From the NCBI RefSeq assembly GCF_006345805.1, contig NC_043010.1:29326001-29390000 (forward strand): a stretch of DNA of 64,000 nt. Reading direction: 5' to 3'. Below the pieces are notes generated by a model, which ran no database searches, was not told the DNA's origin, and saw nothing but the letters and a program-made list of their open reading frames with translations. Positions 20,740-62,630 of this stretch are shown here, piece after piece. The translations under genes were made by a program, and so were the position numbers. The stretch's first letter is position 1. Each line of letters starts with the position of its first letter. The DNA is from Octopus sinensis (Eukaryota).

Positions 20740-21068
20740 CTAAATTTTGAGAAACATAGTAGTATAAACCCATTTAATTAATGGTATGAAATCCATTAGG
20801 ACAATGGAGACAAATGGGACTATAACTACGACCAAAACCGTCGATCCAATGAAGAAAGAGGATTCTCGCTGGTCTTTCATGCTATTTTTCGATCGAATGT
20901 ATTTGGAAGTATTCTTGCGCGGCATAATGAGTTCGATTTCTAATTGTTTCAATTTCTCGTTCAGTTCTTCTTCTGTCAAGTTCTTTGGTTCAGTTTTACA
21001 ACATAAACACGAATGACTAACCGGTGTAGTCCGCGTAAAATCGATATTAGTGTTCTGCTCAAGTGTAG
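20740..21068 (-). CDS. Exon K (terminal coding exon): CLCC motif, coiled-coil-like segment, single TM helix, short tail
   Basis: Acceptor cttccttatttgcttttcttctgtcattacAG, phase 1 (A+CT = Thr). Encodes TLEQNTNIDFTRTTPVSHSCLCCKTEPKNLTEEELNEKLKQLEIELIMPRKNTSKYIRSKNSMKDQRESSFFIGSTVLVVVIVPFVSIVLMDFIPLIKWVYTTMFLKI, then TAG at 20740-20742. Confidence 0.88.
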
Positions 21069-22943
21069 CTGTAATGACAGAAGAAAAGCAAATAAGGAAG
21101 ACCGAAATTGTGCATGTTTGAAGGTTTGTTATTATAATCACGGTGTAAGCCCTTCTGTTCTCGTATGTATATCGATTAGTACACACGTGTAAATGTACAT
21201 GCTTTCACATATTCCTGAATGTTCGATTCAACCGTCACTTTTAAATTAACGCTCAAGTATCACCACCAAATCTATGCATAAAGCCTGGAAGGAACTGAGA
21301 ATTTCTACAGTGTAACTCAGAAAGAGGCTACTGTATCAAAGCAAGGCTAATGTGTCAAAGCGATGTTAGACGCCTCGTCGATATATTCGTCTGCTGTGCA
21401 GGTCGACTCACATATTACTATGTAAAATGTAGCTCTGCTACAAGACTACTCATTTACATATTTCGGTCAGAATGCAGCCATGCAGGGAAACCGCCTTGAA
21501 GAGCTTAGTCAATCAATTCGATCTCAGAATTTATTTTCTTTTTAAATCTAGTACTTATTCTATCGGTCCCTTTTTGCTGATAAGTTAGGGGGACGCAAGC
21601 AAACCAACACCTGTTGTCAACAAACGTGAGACACAAACACATGCACAAATGTGAAGGGAAACGGAAAAATAAAAACGTGACATTGCTATGTTTGCTGCGC
21701 TAACCACTGCTCTAAAGTGACACCACCACCATGGATCACGCAAATTAGTAGATTTAAACTAAGTAGATACAATGTCATACCAGGGACCTGTTAATGGGGA
21801 TCTCAGTTCACACAGAATCAAGATAGAATGTGAAGGCCTTCTGTACAGTTTCTGTCACTAAATTCACGCATAAGGCAGTGATTGGCCTAGTACAGGGCGC
21901 TTGCTTAAGGAGCCGAGCTTTGGAATTGAATCCAAAGCTACGTGGTTACGATGCGAACTAAATCCGAGAGACAGAGTAAGTATAGAAACAGCAGAAAAAT
22001 AGAGGTGACAATATAAATGTTGACCGGGGACTGGAGTGTGTCAGATATATTTAGTAAAGATGAAAGACATAAAGAATTCTGAAGTGTAACTGCGTTCATA
22101 AAAACCAGAATGTCATTGGAAAGTAGTGTATTCAGAATGACATGGATTTGATTTTAGTAATTGTGAAAAGGAAACAGACTGACATGTTGCTAGAAGGTTG
22201 TACTCATGTAGCATAAATAGAGGATTCTGTAACTTGGTATTCATGTACACTAAAAGTGGCATAACGAAATCTTGTTACAAGTACAATTGAGATTTTTGCT
22301 TATTTATGCAATGAAAAACAAAAGGAAGGCTGACAAGCAAGCGATGTGTTGAAAGCATGGCACCATGCAGAGGTTATGGCAACTCTTCAACGTATTCCAT
22401 TCACATAATGTAAGAATGTATTCTTCCCAGCAACTACTTTAGATCAATTGTTGTAAGGTTTTAAGTTTTTATCCGTCGCTTGGTTTAACACCACCGTCTC
22501 CGGTTTGGGTGCATTTAGCAAGTACCTTGAAATCATCTCTCTGGTCTGAGAACACCTTTCTCTGTCTTTGTCTATCTGTTTGTCTGTTTGTCTGTCTGTT
22601 TGTCTGTTTGTCTGTCTGTCTGTCTGTCTGTCTGTCTGTCTGTCTGTCTCTGTCTGTCTGCCTGTCTCTCTCTCTCTCTCTCTCCTCTCTCTCTCTCTCC
22701 TCTCTCTCTCTCTCTCTTCTCTCTCTCTCTCTCTCAAAAGACTCGGAGGATCAGAAAACGGTCAAGGAAAGTGCTTCTTCTCATGTGAGTAAACCATTAA
22801 GAAACTTCTTTTGTTAGGAACTGCAGAAACAACAATGTTCCACAGTCTATTCAAAGCAAAATCAAGTCACGCGCGCACACACACACACGCACACGCTCGC
22901 ACACAAATTAATATAAAAAAGTGTTGTTTCAAAAGAAAATTAC

Positions 22944-23438
22944 TTTCGATTGATTGAGCTGTTGATACTGAATAATCGACGCTGCTTATTTCTTCCGTTC
23001 TGGGTGCTATCGTTGATGGTGTTGTTATTGTTGTTGGTGCTGGTGGCAATGACCTTTCTGTTGAAGTTGTTTCCTCTTTCGCCGACGTGGTTTGGCTTGT
23101 TGTTGTTGTTGTTGTTGTTGGTGTTGCTGTTGGTGTTGTTTCTGATGTTGTTGACTCAGTTGTTGGTGTTGTTGGTGTTGTTGATGTTGTTGATGTTGTT
23201 GGTGTTGTTGATGTTGTTGATGTTGTTGGTGTTGTTGATGTTGTTGCTGTTGTTGCTGTTGTTGGTGTTGTTGGTGTTGTTGATGTTGTTGCTGTTGTTG
23301 GTGTTGTTGGCGTTGTTGGCGTTGTTGGTGTTGTTGATGTTGTTGGCGTTGTTGATGTTGTTGGCGTTGTTGGTGTTGTAGTTGTTATGTTAGAGGTTGT
23401 TGCCATCGCATTCGGCACGTAGTAGCCTTTCGAGTACA
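22944..23438 (-). CDS. Exon J, Thr/Pro/Ser-rich mucin-like stalk
   Basis: Acceptor tttctatttgttaacaccacAG, donor A|GTAATT, 495 nt, phase 1->1. Open frame YSKGYYVPNAMATTSNITTTTPTTPTT...STAQSIE. Confidence 0.85.
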
Positions 23439-61850: not shown

Positions 61851-62539
61851 ATGTATGTATGTATGTATATATATATATATATATATATATATATATATAT
61901 ATATATATATATATATATAGATATATATATATAGATATAGATATATATACTAGACGTCCTCATCGAGCTCTACAAATCTTCCAGGACGAGGCTCTTCTTC
62001 TAGGTTGTAGAATTTCTGGAACCACCATTGACACTGGCTTATACTTATTGTCCGATCCCCATATACTGCATTAATATTCCTCGCACTTTCCGTTGCGTTG
62101 TTGCCTTTATTGTAATATGCCAAATGTGCTCCTTTGTTACTTCCATTCTAGCTTTGAAAGATAACTGTTAAAATCGAACTGCACTCTTCAAAACTTGCAC
62201 TAAGAATAAGGACAAGGTAAAATTACTATCTGCTTTTATAGCAAGTTGATGCAGGTTGTTTATTCCGTCCCCTTCTGGTTTTTAGTTCATGCAATTGAAA
62301 AAAAACCGCATTATTTATGGGATGACCCAATATGTAAATGGATATAACATAATATTATATTGTTATTATATTATATTATATATGTGTGTGTGCATGTTTT
62401 CGAACGAACACATAAAAGACACACATGCATACAAACACACGCGCATATTCATACATACATCATACATGCTTACATATACATTTGAACTTCTGTACAAAGA
62501 AATTAAGACAAAAAGAAAAGATGGATAGATTACACTTAC

Positions 62540-62630
62540 TTCTCTTTATCTTAAAATTACAAGAGGGTCGGTTCTGCATTCGCTCTGTTATGGTGTAACC
62601 ATTTATTTCATTCGACACTGTTAAATTCAT
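62540..62630 (-). CDS. Exon A (first in window) of tandem-PLAT/mucin/TM gene; C-terminal part of a PLAT-like unit
   Basis: Acceptor catttcattgccttctAG, donor A|GTAAGT, 91 nt, phase 0->1. Encodes MNLTVSNEINGYTITERMQNRPSCNFKIKR. Size and phase match exons C, E, G and I, and the sequence resembles exon I (NLT..YT..N..C..I). Confidence 0.7.

Follow-up and report, generated by a model that had tools for sequence, protein, structure and literature searches.

Most known examples of the PLAT/LH2 fold belong to intracellular membrane-docking proteins or occur as single copies in secreted lipases. A chain of PLAT/LH2 beta-sandwiches within a single polypeptide is found in LOXHD1, a cytosolic protein of 15 repeats without a signal peptide or transmembrane (TM) helix. 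Here we report on the gene LOC118766049 of Octopus sinensis, which lies on the minus strand of a 64,000-nucleotide stretch of DNA (the window, with positions counted from its first letter) and encodes a protein that likewise contains a chain of such modules. In contrast to LOXHD1, the octopus protein has a signal-peptide-like N-terminus, a TM helix and an enrichment of N-glycosylation sequons. Membership in the LOXHD1 group could be ruled out by this start, by the single TM helix and by the 2.5-fold sequon enrichment, and no LOXHD1-like protein was present among the 105 matches of the protein in a phmmer search.

Other described proteins share single aspects of this architecture. In pancreatic lipase, PLRP2 and lipoprotein lipase the PLAT domain is extracellular and part of a glycoprotein of the secretory pathway, as we propose for the octopus protein. 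However, these lipases are soluble and carry one PLAT domain fused to an alpha/beta-hydrolase, whereas Pfam scans of the octopus protein found no lipase domain; the protein is not a lipase. The polycystin-1/REJ family is also represented by PLAT-containing membrane glycoproteins, with a domain set of REJ/GPS and PLAT (PMC4890752). Its single PLAT domain is cytoplasmic and follows the first of 11 TM helices, whereas the octopus PLAT units are placed N-terminal to one TM helix; with only one hydrophobic helix and no REJ, GPS or PKD matches in Pfam, the protein does not belong to the polycystin-1/PKD1-like group either. In Plasmodium CCp3/LAP1, a signal peptide and an LH2 domain occur in a multi-domain extracellular adhesive protein, and a docking role was proposed for the LH2 domain (PMC10892792). 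In this case a single LH2 domain is located among LCCL and SR domains, there is no TM anchor and the lineage is unrelated. Finally, membrane-tethered mucins and stalked receptors display a tandem-repeat stalk rich in Pro, Thr and Ser beside a single TM helix with a short tail, as does the candidate stalk described below, but a SEA domain or another domain of the mucin families was not found in the octopus model by Pfam.

The reverse-complemented window is an exact match to chromosome CM016872.1 of the Octopus sinensis assembly GCA_006345805.1. An earlier sequence-only reading of this DNA had proposed a hidden gene of 11 exons. A protein search with this 11-exon model identified it as RefSeq LOC118766049, annotated as "uncharacterized protein" (XP_036365096.1, UniProt A0A7E6FBG1, 792 amino acids (aa)); hence, the gene was not hidden. 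We scanned the minus strand for open segments bounded by AG and GT with defined phase. The minus-strand open reading frames (ORFs) include a TM-like one at 20740-21186 and one rich in Thr and Pro at 22867-23439, and the splice-site and phase scans independently recovered all 11 exons of the earlier model. Joined together, they form a coding sequence of 2160 nucleotides (nt) for 719 aa plus a stop codon with AG...GT at every internal boundary, which reproduces the proposed frame and its compatible phases base for base. The chain is not a product of chance but a real, already annotated protein-coding gene, because ten of the 11 exons match exons of XP_036365096.1 at their exact boundaries.

On the CM016872.1 locus, a chain of 16 exons reproduces XP_036365096.1 residue for residue. 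The gene indeed continues past the right edge of the window, as had been stated, with five further exons, the first of which provides a signal-peptide-like start (MDTCFGHKTTKPSKLSPLLLILMFASFAEG). Compared to RefSeq, the earlier model missed one exon (34154-34062) and contained an extra one, the mucin exon at 23438-22944; since both are symmetric in phase, its frame stayed open. The exon count of 11 was too low: with the mucin candidate counted, the gene comprises no fewer than 17 exons, of which 12 fall in the window. This stretch holds the 3' three-quarters of LOC118766049 (about 70 kb, minus strand). None of the five locus and protein identifiers searched is mentioned in the papers of the searched library, and nothing relevant on PLAT domains in cephalopods was found there. 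The 12 exons of the window are as follows, in the order of transcription, with the repeat units numbered R0 to R4.

62540..62630, minus strand: second half of R0; 91 nt, phase 0->1, bounded by AG/GT; exact exon of XP_036365096.1; the first half of R0 lies beyond the right edge
57900..58111, minus strand: first part of R1, PLAT fold by AlphaFold2 (AF2) and Foldseek; 212 nt, phase 1->0; RefSeq exon
55302..55392, minus strand: last strands of R1, also by AF2 and Foldseek; 91 nt, phase 0->1; RefSeq exon
53198..53430, minus strand: first part of the PLAT unit R2; 233 nt, phase 1->0; PF01477 at 21.6 bits for the ORF alone; RefSeq exon
47723..47819, minus strand: end of the PLAT unit R2; 97 nt, phase 0->1; 26.0 bits for the exon pair; RefSeq exon
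42976..43211, minus strand: exon 6, first part of R3, fold unverified; 236 nt, phase 1->0; RefSeq exon
36616..36700, minus strand: end of R3; 85 nt, phase 0->1; RefSeq exon
34062..34154, minus strand: exon 7b, Cys-containing linker DSNLDKEKLITECSRNKLCNLTAFGLQIHFA; 93 nt, phase 1->1; in XP_036365096.1, not in the earlier model
31831..32027, minus strand: first part of R4, Cys-containing, fold unverified; 197 nt, phase 1->0; RefSeq exon
27501..27594, minus strand: end of R4 (...GVCEWAIF); 94 nt, phase 0->1; RefSeq exon
22944..23438, minus strand: candidate cassette exon for a mucin-like stalk of 165 aa rich in Thr, Pro, Ser and Ala; 495 nt, phase 1->1, open frame bounded by AG/GT; absent from RefSeq
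20740..21068, minus strand: last exon, molluscan C-terminal module; starts in phase 1, stop codon at 20742-20740; RefSeq exon

Two exon classes alternate along the gene, one of approximately 200-236 nt with phase 1->0 and one of approximately 85-97 nt with phase 0->1. Together they build five units with a common exon-pair layout (179+91, 212+91, 233+97, 236+85 and 197+94 nt). After the signal-peptide exon all module boundaries are in phase 1, an arrangement well known from shuffled extracellular modules. The exon 34154-34062 has a strong acceptor and the donor GTAAT, and its product aligns with Cys-containing linkers of the paralogues.

Taken together, we consider it likely that LOC118766049 encodes a type I membrane glycoprotein composed of PLAT modules, a linker, a candidate stalk and a membrane anchor, which acts as a recognition or adhesion receptor by docking to lipids or to a partner protein. 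Several observations weigh against this reading, and they are given with the part of the protein they concern; for the chain as a whole, it must be mentioned that the exon junctions, including those of the mucin exon, are without transcript support.

The sequence-only reading had assumed tandem PLAT-like repeats throughout, which could be confirmed for two of the five units. When the exon pairs were scanned one by one, the pair of R2 alone matched Pfam PF01477 (PLAT) with 26.0 bits (E 1.7e-5), which is above the gathering cutoff of 23 bits and nevertheless borderline, whereas R0, R1, R3 and R4 gave no match. For whole proteins the score is close to this threshold, with 23.1 bits for the earlier model and 22.4 bits for the RefSeq protein. 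In the case of R1, the evidence comes from structure prediction. An AF2 model on an alignment of five sequences reached a mean predicted local distance difference test (pLDDT) of 78.6 and a predicted template modelling score (pTM) of 0.72 and consists of eight strands. Searched with Foldseek against the PDB, the best 41 matches of this model were all PLAT/LH2 domains, with query-normalised template modelling scores (TMq) of 0.58-0.75, probability 1.00 and E values down to 1.8e-4. They include coral and human lipoxygenases, PLRP2 and Rab6IP1, and the lipase structures 1bu8, 2oxe, 2pvs and 1w52 rank among the best ones. Hence, the structural check that had been suggested for the exon pairs gave a PLAT sandwich for R1. 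These results establish that at least two tandem modules, R1 and R2, are PLAT/LH2 beta-sandwiches.

The assignment of R0, R3 and R4 as PLAT units is plausible from the gene structure, and the shared exon-pair layout is the only indication of their common origin with R1 and R2. Here, the negative results are numerous. Pfam did not detect PLAT in R0, R3 or R4, nor in R3 and R4 of all paralogues at E<=10, and hhalign found no similarity of R2 to R3, of R4 to R2 or of R3 to R1. The full-length AF2 model, also based on five sequences, was poor (mean pLDDT 39) with very low values outside aa 240-430, and R0, R3 and R4 are placed at pLDDT 20-40 in it; we disregarded the global Foldseek ranking of this model and only noted its local matches, which include PLAT proteins at probability 1.00. 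Furthermore, the search of the PDB sequences with the R2 profile returned nothing meaningful, and when the two clear exons were compared with the window by tblastn, a weak match between R1 and R2 was the only result above noise. We consider it somewhat less likely than not that only R1 and R2 are PLAT domains and that R0, R3 and R4 represent unrelated beta-rich or Cys-containing modules, which would make the protein a mosaic instead of a PLAT array. R4 has a signature of its own, since three Cys and a C-x-W motif (C...C...C-x-W) are kept in the paralogues. However, the profiles of R1 and R2 themselves align only with an hhalign E value of 0.031, so the missing similarity of the other units is weak evidence in either direction. 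Moreover, all five units have the exon-pair layout (1->0, 0->1, similar sizes) in common, and by eye the R3 sequences of the paralogues show a PLAT-like pattern, W-V-V ... G ... DIG-L.

The proposed type I topology fits the features of the predicted protein. XP_036365096.1 contains a single strong hydrophobic helix (Kyte-Doolittle 2.73, aa 756-774), located 18 residues from the C-terminus, and no other helix exceeds 1.6 on this scale. The N-terminus resembles a signal peptide with an n-region containing three Lys, the h-region LSPLLLILMFASFA and a c-region of small residues, and its hydropathy window reaches 1.21. In the presumed ectodomain 19 N-X-S/T sequons are found compared to 7.7 +/- 2.5 in composition-preserving shuffles, which corresponds to a 2.5-fold enrichment (p ~0.0005). 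All 12 sequons that the earlier model had placed in the repeats and the stalk are present, and the last exon adds two more. The one C-terminal helix, the enrichment of sequons, a conserved NxT in the anchor module and the fact that in other molluscs this module follows ectodomains of the kringle, ephrin-receptor-like and IgGFc-binding types support the predicted type I orientation with the PLAT units on the extracellular side. Two points are adverse to this topology: the signal peptide and the TM helix were judged by hydropathy and inspection only, and the conserved motif rich in Lys and Arg is placed on the presumed extracellular side of the helix, where the positive-inside rule would not lead one to expect it.

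The module encoded by the last exon proved to be much more widespread than the rest of the protein. The phmmer search was performed against 1.84 billion representative sequences, and approximately 95 of its 105 matches cover the last exon only. In contrast, approximately seven cover the repeats, and all of those with a species name are octopod. The module, which corresponds to one exon in LOC118766049, contains in this order CxC, NLT, an EEL helix, the basic K-TS-Y-R-K motif, the TM helix and a tail of 11 aa. Its consensus reads C.C......n.T.EEL.e.i.elk.eLtV.Kk.TSsyiRkKiSA.D.RpSS..iG.vGiv.l..pf.lIvl.Dl, in which the NxT, the basic K-TS-Y-R-K-K-SA-D-R-SS motif and a Pro and an Asp within the TM helix are conserved. 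A jackhmmer alignment comprised 101 of 106 proteins, and in most of them the module ends not more than 15 aa from the C-terminus. All carriers with a species name are molluscs (Octopus, Argonauta, Mytilus, Saccostrea, Magallana, Pecten, Argopecten, Ylistrum and Haliotis), i.e. among the named matches the anchor occurs in cephalopods, bivalves and gastropods. The approximately 100 proteins with this anchor have unrelated ectodomains, including kringle, ephrin-receptor-like and IgGFc-binding ones, and the module itself matches no Pfam family and no PDB sequence. Its description could help to annotate many "uncharacterized" surface proteins of molluscs.

The very short cytoplasmic tail, at most 11 aa here and at most 15 aa in most family members, also raises the question whether the hydrophobic segment is a signal for glycosylphosphatidylinositol (GPI) attachment or a cassette for shedding, so that the mature protein would be lipid-anchored or released. 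Small residues (SS) immediately before the hydrophobic stretch would be suitable for this, and the conserved basic R-K-K motif beside the membrane could be a protease site. However, there is no hydrophilic spacer between the SS and the hydrophobic run, which extends over approximately 25 aa and precedes a charged tail, and the conserved Pro and Asp inside it suggest a functional helix. We regard the GPI or shedding alternative as very unlikely and continue with the TM anchor of a type I protein.

For the candidate stalk, annotation and sequence disagree. The exon 23438-22944 holds an array of 31 copies of a 9-nt repeat with 86% matching. On the sense strand it forms a run of 76 NCN codons, the sole run of at least 25 such codons in the window, and position 2 of the repeat codons is C in 91 of 94, while position 1 varies. 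Beyond the repeat, this frame continues open across approximately 70 non-repetitive codons in the flanks as far as the splice sites, whereas stops occur in the two remaining sense frames. Furthermore, three paralogues (P0005, P0007 and P0012) contain a Ser/Thr-rich insert of 100-190 aa between the CEW motif and the CxC of the anchor, which is exactly the position of the gap in RefSeq XP_036365096.1. In the neighbouring paralogue LOC118765933, the stalk is a single annotated exon of phase 1-1 between the CEW exon, with a donor after 1 nt, and the anchor exon, with an acceptor before 2 nt. Because this annotated stalk exon has the same position and phase, the mucin exon of LOC118766049 is probably genuine, possibly as a cassette exon. 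The stalk claimed by the earlier reading is thus backed by the paralogues, but it has no support from transcripts or annotation.

Indeed, the mucin exon is skipped by RefSeq and does not appear in any annotated product. Three isoforms, one that includes the mucin exon, one that lacks exon 7b and one that combines both changes, were looked up among 15 billion sequences without an exact match, and a protein search across the junction between mucin exon and anchor for ORFs derived from transcripts found no match as well. The 9-nt array is, moreover, open in several frames and on both strands. All this would be expected if the RefSeq product were the only one and the Thr/Pro ORF were an intronic 9-nt microsatellite, a simple repeat, open in every frame of either strand, that has AG and GT at its flanks by chance, in which case the protein would have no stalk. 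The splice scores of the exon are moderate as well (3.9 and 4.2). Against this explanation stand the stalks of all three paralogues at exactly the same position, the phase 1-1 exon in the adjacent one, the frame that is open through the non-repetitive flanks, and the unique NCN run on the sense strand with its nearly invariant second codon position. We therefore consider a stalkless product unlikely and keep the candidate stalk in the proposed glycoprotein. RefSeq probably lacks a stalk exon of 165 aa, which suggests that its model of LOC118766049 has to be corrected.

The search for mollusc homologues that had been suggested brought up both octopod relatives and the molluscan anchor module discussed above. 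The octopod orthologues and paralogues are O. sinensis LOC118765933 (XP_036364684.1), O. bimaculoides LOC106884345 and LOC106876258, O. vulgaris CAI9732740.1 and Argonauta hians GAB1604359.1. With identities of 25-97% they keep the order of modules, i.e. PLAT-like units, Cys linker, CEW domain, Ser/Thr stalk and anchor. All of them are uncharacterised, and in several cases the model is truncated or has no N-terminus. An alignment-seeded search for homologues did not add new members. LOC118765933, with 608 aa, is the head-to-tail neighbour approximately 16 kb upstream in the same orientation (CM016872.1:29430183-29469062), which indicates that the family has been tandemly duplicated. The model of this neighbour appears to be truncated at its N-terminus and has no signal peptide.

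The O. bimaculoides orthologue XP_014780233.1, a truncated model, is only 85-86% identical over the covered part, which for a species of the same genus speaks for fast evolution. The orthologue models of O. bimaculoides and O. vulgaris look mis-annotated: one of these two sister-species models has an N-terminal extension of 60 aa and breaks off after repeat 2, whereas in the other a part of the exon 53430-53198 is joined to the equivalent of the exon at 36700 and the end reads into an intron.

A more detailed picture of sequence change was obtained for exon 6, for which an orthologue from another octopod was found in a Logan contig (SRR11869391). The exon is 83.5% identical without any insertion or deletion, whereas the flanking introns are approximately 20% gapped. 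The 39 substitutions are distributed as 12/14/13 over the three codon positions; 23 of the 29 changed codons are nonsynonymous and six are synonymous. In the first two-thirds of the exon, nonsynonymous changes occurred about as fast as synonymous ones between the octopod species. In contrast, the last 23 codons (VFSFALPTLGHLNVFNFSRYTYK) show no change in the encoded protein and almost none in the DNA. This comparison points to a protein whose evolution is probably fast or relaxed while the reading frame is maintained. The flat codon-position spectrum could also reflect relaxed constraint and not diversifying selection, which counts against the reading as a receptor.

Taken further, the same figures, i.e. 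the even distribution over codon positions and the predominance of nonsynonymous changes, together with the truncated models in O. bimaculoides and O. vulgaris, would also be seen if the locus were a decaying or neutrally drifting duplicate with an open frame as a leftover. However, 16-17 exons with canonical splice sites share one uninterrupted frame, exon 6 shows no indels and an invariant block of 23 aa beside its gapped introns, the enrichment of sequons is preserved, and four octopod taxa have an orthologue or a paralogue of the gene. Decay is therefore very improbable in our view, and the following considerations are based on a functional membrane glycoprotein.

According to our model, the protein would enter the endoplasmic reticulum, would be N-glycosylated at many of its 19 sequons and would probably be O-glycosylated, too. 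It would span the plasma membrane in type I orientation and leave only approximately 11 residues on the cytoplasmic side. If the Thr/Pro-rich exon of 165 aa is spliced in, its product would be O-glycosylated and act as a stalk, holding the PLAT chain at a distance from the membrane. The extracellular PLAT modules may then dock onto a lipid surface or a protein partner, which would make the protein a recognition or adhesion receptor. Such a docking role is assumed because the PLAT fold docks in this manner in lipoxygenases, pancreatic lipases and lipoprotein lipase. The fast divergence and the tandem duplication may be related to a changeable ligand, as in immune, gamete or surface recognition. 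It must be stated on the opposite side that ligand and function are pure inference at present.

A further-reaching proposal would be that octopods possess a restricted, tandemly duplicating and fast-evolving family of receptors, which display PLAT modules outside the cell on a mucin stalk in order to recognise lipids or foreign surfaces. Their tether would be an undescribed anchor cassette of exon size that molluscs have shuffled behind dozens of unrelated ectodomains and that may dock a shared partner or control shedding. In this complete form the proposal is doubtful.

The earlier reading had not recognised the architecture from any named family. This judgement has to be limited with regard to extracellular PLAT domains, which have precedents in secreted proteins such as the pancreatic lipases and Plasmodium CCp3/LAP1 (PMC10892792) and are not new by themselves. 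It still applies to the membrane-tethered tandem arrangement of PLAT domains, which is new together with the probable stalk and the mollusc-specific anchor. The arrangement of domains is unusual and was so far found only in octopods. If the model is true, it would add an extracellular, membrane-tethered and multi-copy use of the PLAT fold; the significance is moderate, as the family is small and belongs to one lineage.

In addition to the gene, the window contains several repetitive elements. Prokaryotic or viral readings of the ORFs in the window were rejected, and the large intronic ORFs are transposon remnants. The first intron in the window carries a 240-aa ORF at 60389-61111 (plus strand) with a match to PIF1-like helicases (PF05970, E 1.3e-54), which is probably a remnant of Helitron type. 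At 45249-46366 a perfect palindrome is found, whose arms are 100% complementary and meet at 45741/45742 without a spacer; it represents either an inverted duplication of very recent origin or an artefact of the assembly. The intron between the exons 42976 and 36700 holds an internally deleted retroelement with long terminal repeats (LTRs) in antisense orientation (37122-39359, plus strand). Its LTRs of 247 nt are 98% identical (37122-37368 and 39113-39359) and surround ORFs for a gag zinc knuckle and an aspartyl protease. The positions 25267-26755, in the intron that precedes the mucin exon, are occupied by a unit of approximately 489 bp in at least three tandem copies with 73-100% identity, and an additional copy of a 106-nt segment is present there in inverted orientation. 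Downstream of the gene, an ORF of 346 aa at 852-1892 (minus strand) combines a PHD finger with a reverse-transcriptase-like tail and is probably the remnant of a non-LTR retrotransposon.

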